Shown here: piece by piece, positions 3,788 through 24,600 of the stretch
Layout: each line of letters opens with the position of its first letter
Numbering within the stretch: the stretch's first letter is position 1
Assembly: GCA_964199315.1 (NCBI GenBank)
Contig: OZ116709.1
Coordinates: forward strand, 23,808,001-23,872,000
Length of the DNA stretch: 64,000 nt
Direction of reading: 5' to 3'
From: Orbicella franksi
Taxonomy: Eukaryota
Notes under the pieces: generated by a model
What the model was told of the DNA's origin: nothing
Databases searched by the model: none
The model's input: only the letters and a program-made list of their open reading frames with translations
Program-made: the position numbers and the translations under genes

Positions 3788-4831
3788 TACAACATTGCTG
3801 GGCATGAAGATGCGTTAAAAAAGTATAAATTATTTTCTTCATATTTACATAGGCAATGTCTTTAATAGTCAATGGAATATTCTCTTACTAAATGTGGGTT
3901 GCAAATAATTTATGTGTATGAAATTCGTCAGATATTCAAAATGATGAGCAGATAAACAGATTGCTACACTTCTCTGTGAAATCTTTTGTCTTAATTTTTT
4001 ATATTAATAACTATTGCAATATTAGTTTTCAGGTAGACTGCACCTTTGACGTAATATAAACAACAAAACAGTAAAACTACAAGAACTCCCAATTACAGAA
4101 TGTTACACAAATTTAACTACCTGTAGTGTTTCTTTGCAGGAAAATATGTATACGTGTAACGCCTATAATTTATATTAATCATTAAATTGTAAACTTAAAC
4201 ATTTTGAATGTTAAGCATAGCAAAAGGAAGTTAACTAGTAAGCTTATTTACACTTATTGCATTTGCCTTAATATTTTTTATCAATTTATAAGCACACATT
4301 GCTATCACAATAAGGCAGTATCAAGAAATACGGCCAAACTCTGAAGATAACTGAACATTGCACAACTGAATATGAACATTTATATTTACAATGAATAAAT
4401 TAACTCTTCTTTGGAACTTGTCAGAACACATCTCTCCAGAGCTCTAATCACACTTAAGCACAGGTCACTATTTTTAAGATTCACAGAAAAATGCAAAGAA
4501 TGGCTTCCAATAAGACATACACACACACAAAAAAATGAGGTCATGGTGGTTTCCTGGCTGGGGATCAGATTGGAAATAAAACTTTGACACTTTTTTTAGA
4601 TAAAACAGGACCAAAAAATTCTTTTTAACACTGTGAACTAGCCTTTGGGAAAGGCTGATGCAACATGTATTAATATTACACTAGCATTGTCCTTCATACT
4701 GGTCCGACACAGTTCATTTACTTGCTTGGTAGTAATGATATTGCATACTTCACCATGCCAATGCATTTGTCTATTTCCATAAGCTGGTGGCCCTTTCTGA
4801 AAGCTCTACTCTGAACTTCAGCATCAAGTTA

Positions 4832-6724
4832 CTATGAATTCCCCGACAGAGTTCCCGATGTGTGTGTTGTTGTACTCATACTTGACGGGGCTAACACCAT
4901 GCTTGGCAAAGAGTTGCTTGTGATCTGAATAGGCTGTGTGTTTATAACATTGCCACTGGAGACATTTAGAGATGTTGGCTGCATGTTTGTAGCCACCTGG
5001 TTCAATTTATTCATTTCCAATTGCCACCCTGGAACTTTTTTGACTGTCATATGTCTTCTTGCATGCTTGGTCAAATGATCTGACCTCATAAACCGCCGTC
5101 CACAGAGAGGGCAAGCAAAGCGCTTTTCTCCAGTGTGAGTTCGCCTGTGTCTCGCCAGCTCATCAGATCTTGCGAAACGCCTGTCACAGTTTTCCCACGT
5201 GCAAGGAAATGGTTTCTCTCCTAAAAAGATACATATAAAATTTATTAATGATTAATTTACAGATAAAATGCTACTGCTTTATTTCCTAAGGGGTTTAGGC
5301 CTGAAGTACCATAAACAAAAAATTTGAACTATGTGAACCACGAAGAAATTCAACACCAAATGAAGAAACAGTATTACATAAGAAACTCCAAGGACAAAAA
5401 ATAAACAAAAATTGAACAAAAATTGATGATAAAAGAAAGAAAGCAGAATCTTTCGATAAATTGCTAATTGATTTCCTTTATACACGAAAACAGTAATTTT
5501 TTGACTTATTTCTACACGCGCGAAGAGTTTTGCCCATCACGCAGCACGCGCTTTGTTTCACGTGATGTGTCAATTGTGGGTGTATGACAGGCACGACATA
5601 GGAGTGTACAGGGCTGGTCATGAAACCTGAATAAAGACAAAATCCCGCGATATCAGGAACGGCCCTGACAATTTACCTAGAACTAAAAAAGGATTTCACT
5701 AAATAAAGTTACTCTAACAGAAAAAGCCCAACTTTTAACATTATTCAAGTAAGAAAGATGCTTTTAGTAAATACCTGTATGTGTTCTCATGTGAGCTTTC
5801 AAGTGGGAACTTTTGAAGTAAGTTTTTCCACAGTTTTCAAACGAGCAAACATGATTTCTTCGGCGATTGGTCTGGCTCTTTGCACCTTCGCTTTCCTGTT
5901 GATTCTGGCCTTGAAGCTGAGGAAGAAGTCCTGCCTGAGTAACGATAAAATTTCTCTGCTGTAACTGGGAAATGTTGCTGACTCCCGCTGGAGTTCCGTT
6001 TGTGGTCACGGGGCAAAGTACAACTACAGCGCCGGCTGGCAGATTTCCTCCGCCGTTTGTGAGCAAAACTTGATTCACATTAACTCCTCCTTGAAAGACC
6101 TTTACAGGCAATCCAGACACTGTAGCTGATGGTGCAGTCGTGGTAGAAATCGCTCCCAAACACCCGCTCCCAGCAGTTGTACAAAGTCCACTGTTCCCAC
6201 GAGGAATTGGTTGCTCGACTGTCGTTTGAATCACTTTGTTATCGAACTGTGTGGGAAAAAAAACGAACTGAATAAACGACAAATACATCAAGAGAGAAAA
6301 AAATATCCTAACCTACACTGGGGCGAACGCAATCGCTTTTTTTTTAACTTCTCACCTTCTCTGGTTCATCCTCGACGGAAGTGGTACTACTCAGTGATGC
6401 GCTCGACGAATTTCTGCTAATAGAAGAAAGACCAGAGTCGGGGCTTGGAGTGTTTCTTTCTGCGTAAGGGGGCGACCACTGACTCATAGCGAGAAGTGAC
6501 TGCACAGCATCTAAGTCGACATTCTCTGTCGTTTCACTTTGACACTCACCATCCGAAAGCACAGAACTGGAGTCCTCCTGAAGTAAACGCAAAAGAGCGT
6601 AAATGATAAGCTTAAGTGAATGAAAACCTTCTGGGTTAAACACTCCTAAACCGATCTCACTTACTTCCATCTCTTTACACGACGACGAAGGCGTTGAAGG
6701 AGGAGACATAGGAAGAGCGTACAT
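4832..6724 (-). CDS. KLF10/11: Kruppel-like factor 10/11 (TIEG/cabut-type) C2H2 zinc-finger transcription factor, ~380 aa, 4 coding exons
   Basis: Exons 6665-6724, 6356-6577, 5775-6246 and 4832-5220 have GT-AG boundaries and join in frame (1143 nt). Three KLF/Sp fingers: [82 protein letters not shown]-terminal [12 protein letters not shown] resembles the Sin3-interaction motif of KLF10/11. Confidence 0.93.
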
Positions 6725-6849
6725 GACTCTATAATATTCGTGTAAAAACTCTGAGAACTATGGAGAGCGAAGGGATTTTTGTTATCGTTTTGTGTTGGTT
6801 GAACTTAGGTCAGCAATGAAGATCATGCAGTACAGAGGGCGTTGAAGGG

Positions 6850-7030
6850 GTTGGACCAATCACAATGTACTTCCGGTAAAATCAACCAATCAGAACGCTT
6901 TATTCATGTGAACGGCGCGTGAATCAAACTGTTTTCACGTGTAGTCAGAGGCTGAAAACGAACTTTGTCCCGCGAAACGGACAAGGTTTGTTTACGTTCC
7001 AGCCAAGGCCAAAATAGAGGCCACGTGATA
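6850..7030 (-). promoter_or_regulatory. Putative KLF10/11 proximal promoter: two CCAAT boxes, ETS site, ChoRE-like element, two CACGTG boxes
   Basis: CCAAT at 6856-6860 and 6886-6890; CCGGAAGT (minus strand) at 6869-6876; CATGTG-n5-CGCGTG at 6905-6921; CACGTG at 6936-6941 and 7022-7027. All lie 130-300 bp upstream of the ATG in a CpG-rich patch. Confidence 0.6.
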
Positions 7031-10000
7031 GAGAAATCAGCTTCGTTGGCCATTCGTGACAACAACAAACCGGATAATTCTCTTTTGGACCAAGGTCACG
7101 CACACGGACATCAAAGAAGCAACGGCAGCATTTTCATAACCACATTATTTTCTGAATTCGCTCTAATTGAAAATATCCCTTACATAACAAACTGGCATCA
7201 TACACGTACTGCTTCGCCGCGCCTCGCCGCACATCGCCTCGCCCACACACAGGCGTTGTTAAAATTGATTTTGGGCAAACCCTTCGCTGAGATCATATTC
7301 AATTTGCGGGAAAATGCGTTAACTCAAAAGAACAATACCAGATCTCAAGCTAAAAGTGAGTAAATTCCACCCGAAAGTAAAAAAAACGCAACGGAAGTGA
7401 AAATAGGTAGTTCTTTTTTCGGTTGCCGCCGTCTATTACTGGTTTTCCTACGGGTAACGTTTTAAACTGGACTTCTCTGATGAGTATTTTCACCTTGTTT
7501 TCAGAGGGCGCAATGTTCAAAGTTATCTCCTTTGCCAGTGCAGTCCATTTATATCCTAGCAATTTGAAAACTTCGCATTATATAAGACTTTTTCTTTCTT
7601 GTTCTCGATCACCTGGCGGATTGAAATTCAGTGTGGTGTCCTTTGTTTTATCGTAATGAGAAATCAGATGTTGATAACTCTTGAACACTACAGAACCAAT
7701 AACGTGCTTTAGGTCTGGAACTGTAAAATGGAGAAGAAAGCGTCTAGTTGAGAGGGTCACGTCGGCTTGGTTCGACGTTTTTATTGAGCGTGAACTCGCC
7801 ACATATGTGTAATTTTTTTCTTTTCTCTTATGCTCCTGTTTAAAGTTTGATTTCTAAACATTCCCTAAGAAGTCTAGAACGAAAACTGTCGGTCGATGTT
7901 ATTGATAATACTGTCATTATTATTTGTACTTCAGTCATAAATTTAGGTGCCTACTCCTAAAGTTTTTGACAGAAAAAACACGCAATTGAAGTCCATAACA
8001 TGATTTGTAAGCAGACTTCCCCAGTTTTCTCCGTTTCGATTGCGTTTCGACTGGTCGCTGCACGGAATAATAAGTTATTATTTTGTTTATGTTAATTTTT
8101 TGTCAATGACTATTTTGTTCTCACCGTCTGTTCGCGTACACGCGCAGTTCTACGAGTCGTGAAGCTTAGTCACGTTTCGCTCGCAAATTAAAGTTTGATG
8201 ACTTTTAACCGGGTTTAATAAGGTTAAATATAACCACGATTAAGATTCCCCGATAATAATTATGTTGCTTGATCAGGCGAGACTTCTCGTGTTAACTTAA
8301 ATTTGCTGCTGGTACTTGAAAATCACCTTATGTAAAAAATCTTTTGTTATAATCTGTCTGCAAATATTCCTGAACTCGCGAAACTTAAGTTGTTGACTAT
8401 CGTATGTATTCGCAAAAAGATATTGAAAGAGAGCTCTGTGCACAGCAAGCAGAAATACGTCCGGTTCATATATTGTCCAGTTATAACCTGTTCCCTTGAG
8501 ATTTGTGCAAGGAACAAAAACTTAAGCTTACCTCTGGATTAGAAAATTCCTGAAGGATAGAAGTTGGAATCAAGGCATGCGCATCAGAAAAAGTGATCTT
8601 TCGATTTGTTGCTCCCGTCTTGCTCTTATTTCGTTTCATACTCTTAACCTGATGCAGTTCTTCGTTATAGAAGCAATGTGCAATATTTTCCAACGGGAAG
8701 AGACTTGCTCCATGAACTGGCTTTCGTTTCCGCAGTGCTGTTTAAAATGTTCGGTCTGTGGGGGGAGGTGCGGGGGTGTATAGAAATATGAAGTTTGACT
8801 GACAGACGTTAATCAGAGTGTGGATCTAAAATAAACATTGTAATTTATTTGACTTGAATCTATGTTGCTGGCCTTTTTGTTCGAAGTAGACACTAATCCC
8901 GAATTACCTTAAGATCGCTTTGAACCGTCCGGCCGTCCCAGCTGACGCGGTGTCGGGGTCCCAGATTCCAACACAAAAGCGTGACTGTTCCCACTCCTTG
9001 CATTTATACTATCATCATTTACAATTCCTCTCACGGTTATCTGAATCCCAGGACTTTCTCTCTTTGACCATGAAAAATTCTGGTACAGAGAAATTCAGTC
9101 AAGAAGAGCACGACTGCAAATCTTTTGTTGAATAGTCCCTATTTAGAATATGGCTCCAGGGAGGGTTCTCCTCAATTTCGCTTGGTCGTTCTGGTGTTGA
9201 AAAAGATTCTAGACGTTAGTTTGGGTAGCGTGTGATCAAGCCTTCATTTCCTATGTCTCTCCTACGGAGAAGACGCTTCTCTCTCCGGACAAAATAAAAT
9301 AAAATAAGCATGATCCCAGGTTATGCCCGGTATTTGTGCCTGTGATCAGGCAGAAGTTGCCACGAGATGTTCGCAGCACGTGGCCGTCTATGATCCGGCA
9401 TTTTCGTGCCAGATAGGTTTACAGACGTTGCCTGTCACGCAAAATGGTCAAAACAAACTTACAACAAAGGATTTTTGGTACTTTTGATAAAGTTAGAACC
9501 CGTGTCAATTGGCTACCTATGACATCTACATGGTCCGTACAAGGTGGAAAGTGGACTCGGGTACCTGAATTTAATCCTAGCTGTAAAGGGAAACACTTGA
9601 GGACCTGCCAAATCATATGGGAACTTTGAATTCTGAAGCCCAGGTCGAGGTAAGTTCATGATTATGTAATCCGCTCAAGTGACACGTGAATTCCGAATCC
9701 GTGCGGTACAGTGATATTGTACCAGCAATTTACAATAGTTTCTTTTTCTTGCACTCTGTGTGTCTGCCAAGTTTTCATGCGGCCACTGAGGCTCGGGTCG
9801 AAGTTACCCCGTGATCCATTTCATACTACACGACTGATTACTTTATACTAGCGCTCATTTAAAAAAAGCCTTGTCACTGTGGTTTGATGCTATTTTCTCA
9901 AACATGTCGAACGTTTTTTTTTTCCTCGATGTTTTACAGCGCACCATTCTTGATGACCTCGATTGATCTGTAAGTTGTTCAGATAGTCGGTTGGACACAA

Positions 10001-10794: not shown

Positions 10795-11690
10795 TTGTGT
10801 CTATCCCTCGTTTAGGTCGAGGATGATAGTCTTTATTGATCAGCGGTGTGTCCGCAGATGGCTTATGAGTCCAATTTTTGGCCGAAAGGCTCGGCCGCAT
10901 TCTGGGCAACTGGTATTGTGCGGGAGACCAGGCCATGTTTGTTGTTTGCGCTCTTTCCTATGCCTTCGTTTTTCTTCCAGCTCTTGACATCTTCTCGCTT
11001 CGAAAGCCTTGCAGTTCCGTCGCTGATAGTGGTTCTCCAGAGAAGCCTGTCCTTTGTTGTCTCCCCCCAAAGAGACTTTTAAATTAATTTTGCAATAACA
11101 CTAAGGAAACAATACTTACAATACAATTACGAACAGTACAATCTTTAGCCCACTTACAGCACTGTACTCTACTTACATTATATTGCTCTAATTATTTACA
11201 CTACTTAAATTACAATATCTACACGATACAGTAACAACAAGGGGCAAAGAAAAAAAAAAGGAGAAAAATATAATAGATAATTATCATTTCAGCTTGAGGT
11301 TGTACTATAGAAACAAACCAGACCAAAGGCGTGTGGTACATTATAGATAAAATGAGCTATGCACCTAACAGGATAGAGTTACAAAGAGTTACATTGATGC
11401 TACACTTCTTGAGGTTCGCTTTCAGCACATCTTTGAAGCGCTTCCTCTGGCCCTCTCTTGGACGCTTGCCTTCTACTTGTTCAAAGTAGAAGATCTGTTT
11501 AGGAAGACGTCGGTCTGGCATTTGTACTAGATGGCCGCTCCACCTGAGTTGACTGTTGATGATGCTAGCCTCGATGCGAGTTGTTTTCGCCTCTGATAAT
11601 ACGCTGACGTTGGTTCTTCTGTCTCAATGGCAGTCCCGGCGCACTTCAGGCGATATTGGATTTCATCCTGAAGCGAACTCTAGTACGTTG
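10795..11690 (-). mobile_element. 5'-truncated, decayed RTE-clade LINE (C-terminal part of the ORF), interrupted by an insertion
   Basis: Minus-strand translation gives RRTNVSVLSEAKTTRIEASIINSQLRWSGHLVQMPDRRLPKQIFYFEQVEGKRPREGQRKRFKDVLKANLKKC and FEARRCQELEEKRRHRKER...CPECGRAFRPKIGLISHLRTHR, typical RTE C-terminal motifs. Frameshifts are present. Confidence 0.85.
11075..11380. mobile_element. 306-bp insertion nested in the RTE fragment, with 7-bp TSD
   Basis: CAAAGAG flanks both sides (11068-11074, 11381-11387). Removing the insert and one TSD copy restores the frame KKCSINVTLWGETTKDRLLWRTTI. Confidence 0.75.
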
Positions 11691-21670: not shown

Positions 21671-24600
21671 TCACGTGCTAGTGCTATGATGGTGCACGAG
21701 CATTGTTCCTTCGGTTGCCGAGGACTTCTGATAAACTGATTGTACCGAGTTTATATCCTCTTTACGTGGACGACAGAAGCAGCATCTGAGAATGTTTTTG
21801 AATTCACGGTTGAACCTTTCGTTGAGGAAAATATAAAAGCACGGATTGATGGCACTATTGGCGTGTGACAAAAAGTAAAAACTGGTTTCCACGTGTCCGA
21901 AGGCAAGCAAAGCTTTATATGTGTCAGTGAAAAAGTATCCCAGTAAATGCATTATGTGAGTCGGCAGCCAACAAAGAGCAAACGTAACCACCACGATGAT
22001 GAGCATGCGCAATACCTTCCGCTTAGACGATTCATTCTGACGTTTTTGATGAGCGGTTGTGACTCCTGGAATCTCACGTGACCACAGGCGACGACCGATA
22101 AGAATGTACAACCCTGCGATGATAGCAAGAGGAATCAAATAGAGCACCACAAACGTGGTCATAAAATAGGCCCTAGCCACTTCATACTGTTTGCTACGGT
22201 CGCTCGACAGATAGTTCCAAACCATTCTGCAGTCCCAGCGGGAACCATCGGTTGCGGGCACGCTATCAAAGAGAACCAGGTACAGCGAGAAATACAGCGA
22301 TGATGAAATCCAAATCACGGACGTCACTAGTTTTGTGTTTCGAATGACGGGGACGTCGACAAATGGATGAAGAATCGCGAAGTAGCGGTCCAGCGAAATG
22401 AACACGAGTGTGATGATGCTGGCAGCGATGGAGAGAACCCCTGAGAAATTCACAAACTTACACGTGACTGACCCCAGCCCACCGGAAATCCAGGTCTGGC
22501 GAGCGTACAAAAATTTAACCTACAAGAACAGATAGGTGCATGGACATGTTAGTGAAGTCTGCCAACAATGAATCATGTCAGTGTTTTTCTAATAAAAATT
22601 AGATAAACCTGACAAAGTAGTGGCTATTAGACCGATTAAAAACAACTTTCAAGCTGCTCGACCTTTTCTTAATTCTGAGATGTCCTCTACCTTGCTAATA
22701 ACCCGACCGAAATCCCTACTTATTTTTACTCACTTCTTATCCTCACCTGTCCTACAGGACATCTAAGGCCATGATCGAAATACCATCCTCAGGCAAATTC
22801 TCGTTAGCGGGTAGACGCGGCGGCGCGGGAAAAAAATTACAGACAAATGTATGGAAAATTAGAAAAATTAACTGAGCGTCTTTTAGCCAAGCTACATCCT
22901 TCAAACTTGGTGAAAGCTATCTTCTACCTAGTTTTTCAACGTTACGATTCCCAAATTGTGTAAAATTCAATTTTGGAAAAAGTTATTTGCCATCGTAATC
23001 CCATACAAACACAGTAATTTCTGACCGCTTTGCCTACCAGTCAAGATGGTGTCGAAAACCGTGATAAGGTCTATTGAGCTTCTTAGCCTTTGGAATCATG
23101 TTTTCATATAACGAACCTGGCTAAAATTGTATCTTATGGCTAAACTTGACTGACATCTGTTACTCACCTCTGAAGGCATAATAAAAAGAGAAACAAGAAG
23201 ATCTCCAATGGCCATGTTAACAATCAGGAAGTTAAAGGTGCTCTTCATTCTCTTATGAGAGGCTACAATGTAGATGATGCACGCGTTACCAAAGAAACCG
23301 AAGATAAAGACAACGACATAGGCTATTGTCATCCACACAGTGGCGTTGTCATTAACTCTCGCTGTGACAGTTGATGCTGTAGAGTTTGCCCAACCTAACG
23401 ACAGACGTTAAACCAATCACCATTCAGTATAAATTAACAGTAGGCCTTCGCTATAGCTCACCTAGCTACAAGAATGCTTTCGAAACAAATCAGGAAGATT
23501 GTTTCGCCGAGGTTCAAGCAGCGTTAAAGAAGGGGAAATTGATTGGAAACTAAGACAGGGCAGGACAACTGAACGCTGAGAAGATTTTAAAAATCAAATC
23601 AATATTTCTAACCACCTGAGATTAGCAGCTGCACAGTAATTAACTAGCACACCTTCTTCGATGTTACTTTTCGCCCTGGCCGGTTTATTTTTAAAATAGT
23701 AAACTGAATTTAACATTGAGAACGTTGCTTGGAAATTGAGAATTTAAGAATATCAAACTTAGAAAACTGATTTGTCTCTCTTCCAGTGTGTTGTGGCTAG
23801 CACGAAACAACATTGTTCCGTTGAAATTAAACACCATAAACATTAGTTTTCCATCAATATAGTGGTCGGCGAGCTTTATTGCCTTGTTTTATTAACAAGA
23901 ATATCGGAAATGAGCTCGAGAAACTTTCACTCTCTAAAATATGTACAGGAGAAACTTTTTCCAATATGATAAGTAGTATCCAAAATAATAAGTAGATTTA
24001 ACAAAAACGTTTTTATTGAAACAGCCAGCGTGAATTCAAAGACAACTGGGATTGGAAACAATTTTTATCGGCAGCTGCTAAGAATGTTCCTAATGGACGT
24101 TTTTTCTTTTCTTCTTTGATGGAGAACACGACAAGATTTTTCATTTTACTCAAACCTATTAGCATTGCGAGGTATTCTATAGGAAAGCTCGGAAAGGTTT
24201 CAATTATTCAAGACTTGTCAGTTTTTTTAGCTTGGCTGTAATGAGTATTCACAGAAACATGACAGTCTCCGCTCGCTTAATTTGGGTATGGTAATGAAAT
24301 TAATTTTGTTTTAGTACCAAAAAAATTTATGGAAAAAATACACACAACTTATAGGGAGATACATCAATGTTTTTCAAATTCGTCAAGTTCTCGTTCTCTT
24401 AGACCGCACAAAATGACAAGGAACAACAAACTGAACAAAAATTCTGTAGTTTTATGTATAATTTGATCACCTCATGACAAAAGTGTAATTAAAATTTAAT
24501 TCACAGCGACACTGGCACAAATGGAGTTAGACAAACTCGACGCCTTGTATATTTTAAAGCAAACTAGAATTTTATCTGAAAAACATCAGAGGCAGTTTGC

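Follow-up and report, generated by a model that had tools for sequence, protein, structure and literature searches.

Among the closest described systems is the promoter of TXNIP (and of ARRDC4), in which a tandem carbohydrate response element (ChoRE) and two CCAAT boxes are bound by MondoA/ChREBP-MLX and by NF-Y (PMC2791861). The ChoREs of TXNIP need the two CCAAT boxes, and NF-Y occupancy is required for MLX to be recruited (PMC2791861). By textbook account, the Mondo-Mlx heterotetramer recognises the two half-sites of a ChoRE in a fixed phase, and in the validated element of the lipogenic gene FAS the half-sites are CATGTG at the start and GGCGTG at the end (CATGTG-N5-GGCGTG). An earlier note on a coral locus had proposed such an element at a KLF10/11 promoter, on the premise that rodent Klf10 and Drosophila cabut are targets of this pathway, and the premise holds in the literature: the induction of Klf10 is lost in mice with a hepatocyte Chrebp knockout, the human KLF10 promoter is occupied by MondoA at a level about 30-fold below that of TXNIP, and Drosophila cabut is strongly Mlx-dependent. 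Bombyx cabut is a Mondo-Mlx target as well. Mondo and Mlx exist in cnidarians and in Trichoplax, and cnidarian Mondo carries the glucose-sensing regions. Our literature searches found no report of a cnidarian ChoRE or of the regulation of a cnidarian KLF10/11 gene.

The stretch analysed here, hereafter the window, comprises 64,000 nucleotides of the genome of the coral Orbicella franksi. A pattern search returned CATGTG-AACGG-CGCGTG at 6905-6921 as the sole match to CAYGNG-N5-CNCRTG in the whole 64-kb window. This bipartite, E-box-like element of the ChoRE type, identified from the letters of the window and from its recurrence at the same place in orthologous promoters, was assigned to neither strand; it consists of the hexamer CATGTG nearer to the gene (6905-6910), the spacer AACGG (6911-6915) and the hexamer CGCGTG farther from the gene (6916-6921). 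The search pattern CAYGNGNNNNNCNCRTG is its own reverse complement, so every site was counted once. The chance of a match per position was 3.8e-6 at equal base frequencies and 2.3e-6 by shuffles. Shuffled windows are expected to contain 0.15 matches each, and at least one match was found in 14 of 100 shuffles, which makes a window-wide hit unremarkable on its own. Within the 400 nt upstream of the KLF ATG, a match was obtained in 19 of 20,000 dinucleotide shuffles (~0.001).

To the side of the gene, the element is followed by two CCAAT boxes that are inverted with respect to the gene, box 1 at 6886-6890 (plus strand, 14 nt from the element) and box 2 at 6856-6860 (plus strand, 25 nt from box 1), both of them putative NF-Y sites. 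As at TXNIP, two CCAAT boxes thereby adjoin the ChoRE-type element within the proximal promoter. An ETS core, CTTCCGG, lies between the CCAAT boxes (6870-6876, plus strand), and a GC box that reads ACGCCC on the gene strand is located just downstream of CCAAT box 2 (6835-6842, minus strand). On the other side, a canonical E-box CACGTG is found 14 nt beyond the element (6936-6941) and a second one at 7022-7027, neither assigned to a strand. The earlier note had been right about the match at all defined positions, about the order of magnitude of the chance per position (which it put at about 1e-6), about the improbability of such a hit in a promoter and about the presence of two CCAAT boxes and an ETS site; its distance of about 180 bp from the KLF ATG corresponds to 180 nt, with the ATG at 6724 on the minus strand.

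The gene structure was established from poly(A) RNA-seq reads, taken from runs that bear no condition labels and placed on positions 4000-9500 of the window, which gave three introns from spliced reads (6578-6664, 6247-6355 and 5220-5773). The proximal exon 1, on the minus strand as are all exons of the gene, spans 6665-6800 with an approximate 5' end, and encodes 20 residues from the ATG at 6724-6722. It is joined to exon 2 across junction 6577|6665, which was covered by 70 spliced reads in run X23. The long open reading frame 6344-6724, which had earlier been taken as exon 1, was thus found to contain an intron of 87 nt that is in frame and bounded by GT..AG (6578-6664, minus strand; joint 6576/6664, cut +1). 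The predicted products P0131, P0001 and P0132 read through this intron and are therefore not real protein segments. Exon 2 (6356-6577), supported by translation and spliced reads, contains a Sin3-interaction-type motif of 12 residues; exon 3 (5774-6246), supported by translation, Pfam and reads, carries zinc finger 1 at its end; and the last exon (4000-5219) carries zinc fingers 2-3, a 17-residue tail, the stop at 4832-4834 and a 3' UTR, which extends past position 4000, the edge of the stretch on which reads were placed. The three C-terminal C2H2 fingers (Pfam), the Sin3-interaction-type motif and the KKxPxWQxExxKLN tail are those of KLF10/11 (TIEG) proteins. The closest full-length relative is Acropora palmata KLF11, to which the exon-2 region is 71% identical, and the relatives of that protein are named KLF11 or KLF10 in Nematostella, Dendronephthya, Porites, Orbicella and vertebrates. 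Judged by these features, the downstream gene is a KLF10/11 orthologue.

The spliced reads place the true exon 1 between 6665 and about 6760-6800. Above 6760-6800 the poly(A) read depth drops to about zero, and one contig from RNA run X15 terminates near 6799, within a block that is conserved in Nematostella, which together place the proximal start site at about 6760-6800 and the element about 105-160 nt upstream of it. The block, TGCATGATC ... CTGAYCTAAGTTCAA on the gene strand (6797-6829, minus strand), is invariant in corals and common to Nematostella and the divergent hexacoral L036, and lies at the likely proximal start site. With a start at the 6800 end of the range, the CCAAT boxes would be located at about -60 and -90. 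The gene also has an alternative distal first exon (8532 to about 8772, minus strand; ATG 8639), which is spliced to 6577, accounts for 22 of the 92 exon-2 junction reads in X23 and is represented by an X15 contig at 8531-8772. Its N-terminus, MKRNKSK..., resembles that of Acropora palmata isoform X1. The KLF gene is therefore a gene with two promoters and two N-termini, and in the distal transcripts the element is sequence of intron 1. Further alternative distal first exons were observed at 8908-9190 and beyond 9463. A divergent plus-strand gene near 7000 (ORF 6965-7363) was considered and rejected, since it had no Pfam hit and no poly(A) reads at 6944-8415; no plus-strand transcript was found over that interval in the poly(A) RNA-seq.

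Elsewhere in the window, an ORF for a rhodopsin-type GPCR was observed at 21674-22510 on the minus strand. A short ORF with one C2H2-finger-like stretch (CPECGRAFRPKIGLISHLRTH) lies at 10840-11070, also on the minus strand, without obvious gene context, and may be a remnant of a repeat or transposon.

To compare promoters independently of the motif, we performed searches with the exon-1/2 peptide and with the full-length KLF11 protein, and then looked up the encoding contigs. These loci came from stony corals (L001, L002 and L005, on Logan and ENA contigs), the sea anemone Nematostella vectensis (L003), the octocoral Dendronephthya gigantea (L004), the amphioxus Branchiostoma lanceolatum (L006), the hemichordate Ptychodera flava (L007) and mouse (Klf11, L008). 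Vertebrate KLF10 was in neither list of homologues, and mouse Klf11 was compared in its place. On the gene strand, the window, L001 and L002 all read CACGCG-CCGTT-CACATG, followed by 14 nt to the first ATTGG and 25 to the second. The same distances were found in L005 (CACGCG-CCGTC-CACATG) and in Nematostella (CACGAA-GTGTT-CACATG). The distances are 16 and 25 nt in Dendronephthya (CACGCG-TTATT-CACATG), 14 and 37 nt in amphioxus (CATGCG-GCGGT-CACATG), and 23 and 27 nt in Ptychodera (CATGCC-GACAT-CACATG). The strict consensus is present at the same place of the promoter in all four corals, in Dendronephthya and in amphioxus. Nematostella and Ptychodera are one mismatch off, at position 1 of the second hexamer (CATGTG-AACAC-TTCGTG and CATGTG-ATGTC-GGCATG in the orientation of the window), and annelid loci, which were found by a pattern scan described below, are also one mismatch off. 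With the hexacoral L036 included, both hexamers conform to CAYGNG and CNCRTG in the window, L001, L002, L005, L036, L004 and L006, and the spacing is exactly 5 nt in all eight loci found independently of the pattern. Three other scleractinians and one further hexacoral have the same two hexamers and the same spacing as the window. The conservation of both hexamers and of the 5-nt spacer, which the earlier note had named as the decisive comparison, was thus found from corals to amphioxus, with a single mismatch in Nematostella, Ptychodera and the annelids, and the pre-bilaterian age that it had proposed was borne out for the element by its presence in anthozoans, amphioxus, Ptychodera and annelids.

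The order of parts is shared as well. On the gene strand it runs CAYGNN, 5 nt, CACATG, 14-23 nt, ATTGG, 25-37 nt, ATTGG, GC/CACCC box and start site, and the ATG follows CACATG by 166-223 nt across the orthologues. The 14-nt gap between element and CCAAT box is kept in corals, Nematostella, amphioxus and annelids, and that of 25 nt between the CCAAT boxes recurs in every anthozoan and in mouse Klf11. The CCAAT pair itself is kept in every orthologue, mouse Klf11 included, and a GC/CACCC box follows the second ATTGG in every orthologue, reading ACGCCC in corals and Nematostella, CCGCCC in Dendronephthya and amphioxus, CACACCC in Ptychodera and GCACCCACGC in annelids. In mouse Klf11 (L008 5704-5738), the two inverted CCAAT boxes with the anthozoan 25-nt gap are followed by GC boxes; the hexamer pair was not found in this promoter, which has only isolated CACGCG and CACGTG hexamers. 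Other parts have a narrower distribution. The ETS motif (CCGGAA/CCGGAT) occurs only in hexacorals, with none in Dendronephthya, amphioxus or Ptychodera. The E-box at 6936-6941 is conserved in hexacorals (with a 15-nt gap in Nematostella) and absent in Dendronephthya, and the E-box at 7022-7027 is kept in four scleractinians, with a similarly placed CACGTG in Nematostella.

Within scleractinian promoters, 55% of the columns are invariant, so that conservation among corals only is weak evidence. The true footprint comes from the comparisons across classes and phyla, since at those distances nothing but the boxes can be aligned. Across the lineages compared, the spacer length, the CAYG core and the CACATG core are invariant; the first four spacer positions vary among lineages, and the fifth, which adjoins CACATG, is T in 7 of 8. 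A fixed spacer length and fixed cores combined with variable spacer letters are the hallmark of a bipartite site whose helical phase is fixed. The probability of a strict match arising in the 400 nt upstream of the ATG was 0.0014 in Dendronephthya and 0.0024 in amphioxus by shuffles, and these figures precede the further condition that both matches sit 14-16 nt from the CCAAT pair. On this sequence conservation, the element is a cis-element that certainly is under constraint and predates the split of cnidarians and bilaterians, and that it is functional and selected is beyond reasonable doubt. The module is shown to drive the proximal promoter, which is the major one in this coral, and to be held by purifying selection in Cnidaria and Bilateria alike.

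Several further features of these loci were recorded. In amphioxus (L006 1-4365) and Ptychodera (L007 1-4750), KLF10 has an ornithine decarboxylase gene as its divergent neighbour on the upstream side; the vertebrate pairs KLF11-ODC1 and KLF10-AZIN1 are presumably linked likewise, and no ODC neighbour of the KLF gene was found within 13 kb in the coral window. The stony coral L005 contains two more strict ChoRE-consensus matches, CACGTGAAATCCCCGTG and CACGGGTGTTCCACGTG (8317-8333 and 8357-8373), which are 23 nt apart, lie 4.3 kb downstream of the KLF ATG and have no counterpart in the window. One strict match, CATGTGCCAAGCACGTG, is located inside the amphioxus KLF10 gene (L006 10358-10374).

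To broaden the sampling, JGI metagenome contigs were scanned with the composite pattern CCAATCA-N21-36-CCAAT-N12-24-CATGTGA-N6-CRTG. The scan returned 36 loci, 28 of which carried a coral-type or an annelid-type module. The 66-nt coral-type module was present in 11 of the 36 loci, with exon 1 (MYALP...) about 130 nt downstream where the peptide search matched, and contributed the new spacers CTTTT and, in the divergent hexacoral L036 (exon 1 MSSLPLSPPSSP), CGGCT. The annelid-type module, CACGCT-NNGAT-CACATG-14-ATTGG-27-ATTGG followed by the GCACCCACGC box, was found at 17 loci with 11 distinct sequences, and the longer contigs of this type have a KLF zinc-finger gene about 2.3-5 kb downstream on the same strand. 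The DNA of this type occurs in runs labelled annelid metagenome. The annelid contigs yielded neither a Sin3-interaction-type motif nor an exon 1 of the form M..LPLSPP, and the gene is called only KLF10/11-like, by its zinc fingers and an R3-like motif (GAAIIVVNC). Of the 28 module loci, 13 had a confirmed match to KLF coding sequence: tblastn gave 11 of them, and the exon-1 peptide added 2. L012, together with 68-nt-type loci among L010-L043, showed the same promoter grammar with a third upstream CCAAT box. The remaining 8 of the 36 loci had neither module type: L017, L027 and L033 share one 79-nt sequence, and the others gave Pfam hits to aldehyde dehydrogenase/amino-acid kinase, amidohydrolase and aminotransferase. 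These eight are probably chance matches, of which about 6 are expected by a rough estimate that assumes a collection of about 5e11 bases. Because the pattern itself served to select the scan loci, the fact that they do not vary at its positions is no proof that the hexamers are invariant. The scan does show that the composite pattern is almost specific to KLF promoters and that it is present in a protostome lineage too.

As to the factor that reads the element, we lean, with modest confidence, towards a Mondo/Mlx site, that is, a carbohydrate response element. A second CAYG core is kept at exactly 5-nt spacing despite randomised spacers and flanks, which argues for a complex that recognises a pair of half-sites held in constant phase. 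The ChREBP ChIP-seq motif CABGTG-nnCnG-nGnSTG is matched by the coral site at each of its specified positions, and the derived consensus of that motif has CGG-CGCGTG in common with the site. In the mechanism that we propose, a Mondo-Mlx heterotetramer would bind both hexamers at their fixed 5-nt spacing, NF-Y on the two CCAAT boxes would help to recruit it, as at the vertebrate TXNIP promoter, and KLF10/11 transcription would rise with intracellular hexose phosphates. The GC/CACCC box could add Sp/KLF input or autoregulation, and the two upstream CACGTG boxes, found only in hexacorals, could add clock, Myc/Max or USF input.

Some observations argue against Mondo/Mlx. Nematostella, Ptychodera and the annelids deviate from the strict consensus at one position; the variable hexamer has CATG rather than CGTG in amphioxus and Ptychodera; the invariant half is CACATG rather than the high-affinity CACGTG, with a T flank in 7 of 8 lineages; mouse Klf11 retains the CCAAT pair without the hexamer pair; and the occupancy of MondoA at human KLF10 is weak. 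The next most probable reading, which we consider rather doubtful, is that this ancient promoter element is used by other bHLH or bHLH-Zip factors in cooperation with NF-Y. Candidates would be USF, MiT/TFE, Myc/Max/Mnt, SREBP, Hes/Hey (class C CACGCG) and CLOCK:CYCLE, and the outcome would be constitutive, nutrient-kinase, clock or growth control instead of sugar sensing. The invariant half reads TCACATG, and MiT/TFE prefers a T flank of this kind; a T-flanked CACATG would suit MiT/TFE or USF as well. CACGCG is a class C site for Hairy-type repressors. The FAS promoter also has USF and SREBP sites, and USF presumably binds a CATGTG box there. Klf10 and cabut are described in the literature as clock-regulated too, two canonical CACGTG boxes lie just upstream of the element in hexacorals, and the persistence of the mouse Klf11 CCAAT boxes without the pair fits such factors. 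However, a single-dimer factor leaves unexplained the second CAYG core at exactly 5-nt spacing, a core that chance would place at a fixed position with a probability of 1/128 in each independent lineage, and the tandem E-boxes of CLOCK:BMAL1 are spaced by 6-7 nt, not 5. NF-Y is often paired with USF/MAX E-boxes, but at a reported distance of 10-12 bp, as against at least 14 nt here (PMC4889920).

Much less probable is the reading in which AhR:ARNT or HIF:ARNT uses the CGCGTG half as the core (GCGTG / RCGTG) of a xenobiotic or hypoxia response element. GCGCGTG does fit the KNGCGTG form of the XRE, GCGTG is retained in corals, Dendronephthya and annelids, and an AhR-KLF10 transcriptional axis has been reported in Anopheles, in a paper whose main text contains neither 'XRE' nor 'E-box'. 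We rate this explanation low because Nematostella (TTCGTG), amphioxus (CGCATG) and Ptychodera (GGCATG) keep the pair and its spacing without a GCGTG core, and it leaves the invariant CACATG half unexplained. A functionless chance match, carried along by the slow divergence of the whole coral promoter, could draw on the 14 of 100 matching window shuffles and on the 55% of invariant scleractinian columns, but is refuted, and has a negligible probability, given per-promoter chances of 0.001-0.0024 and the same position of the element in octocoral, sea anemone, amphioxus and hemichordate promoters that are otherwise unalignable outside the boxes.

If the Mondo/Mlx reading is extended to all lineages, the module would be the ancestral eumetazoan KLF10/11 promoter, a direct Mondo/Mlx and NF-Y target kept at the sequence level through more than 600 million years of cnidarian, annelid, hemichordate and cephalochordate evolution, and in photosymbiotic corals it would couple symbiont-derived sugar to a Sin3-recruiting repressor. 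We put this forward tentatively, as a possibility that falls somewhat short of a favoured conclusion. The idea that the link could read out symbiont-derived glucose in a coral gains no specific support, as the same module is found in Nematostella, Dendronephthya, amphioxus and Ptychodera. We take these four to be non-photosymbiotic, and the presence of the module in such species indicates an inherited general feature and no adaptation to symbiosis. The module could still report symbiont-derived sugar in corals, and as a short, defined element whose hexamers and spacing lend themselves to mutation in reporters it would offer those who study corals and sea anemones a read-out of host sugar status and therefore of the symbiont carbon supply. 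Promoter modules conserved at the sequence level between cnidarians and bilaterians are rare, and if the ancestral reading is true, this one would be among the very few cis-regulatory modules that can be aligned between Cnidaria and Bilateria. It would mark the Mondo/Mlx to KLF10/11/cabut edge of the sugar-sensing network, an edge known only in flies, moths and mammals, and if binding is confirmed, both the edge and its NF-Y dependence would date to the eumetazoan ancestor. Whatever factor binds, the module provides a clean test case for a promoter grammar of spacing and order that has survived in randomised surroundings.

Compared with the described systems, the type of element and the regulatory edge were already known; the novelty lies in how deeply the whole module is conserved at the level of sequence. 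Rodent and human KLF10 and Drosophila and Bombyx cabut belong to the orthologous gene family and show the same regulatory edge as proposed here; the likeness drawn here is one of gene family and edge, and the mouse paralogue Klf11 is without the pair. Half-sites of the form CATGTG-N5-NNCGTG are common to the coral site, the ChoREs of lipogenic genes (FAS CATGTGCCACAGGCGTG, ACC) and the ChREBP ChIP-seq motif, whereas the FAS ChoRE belongs to a distal enhancer at about -7 kb and the coral module is proximal to the core promoter and tied to putative NF-Y boxes. The NF-Y / USF-MAX modules likewise pair a CCAAT box with an E-box near the start site and include double CCAAT boxes, but they have a single CACGTG at 10-12 bp, in contrast to the two non-canonical hexamers at a distance of at least 14 nt in the coral (PMC4889920). 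The promoter of TXNIP (and ARRDC4) resembles the coral promoter in having 5-nt-spaced pairs of E-box-like hexamers within ~200 bp of the start site, adjoining two NF-Y boxes, and ChoRE-b of TXNIP contains the CACGCG hexamer (PMC2791861). TXNIP, which is reported to be vertebrate-specific, differs in having two ChoREs that flank the CCAAT boxes and, in addition, a FOXO site (PMC2791861), whereas the KLF10/11 module has a single pair, with two inverted CCAAT boxes and a GC box downstream of it, and extends from Cnidaria to chordates.
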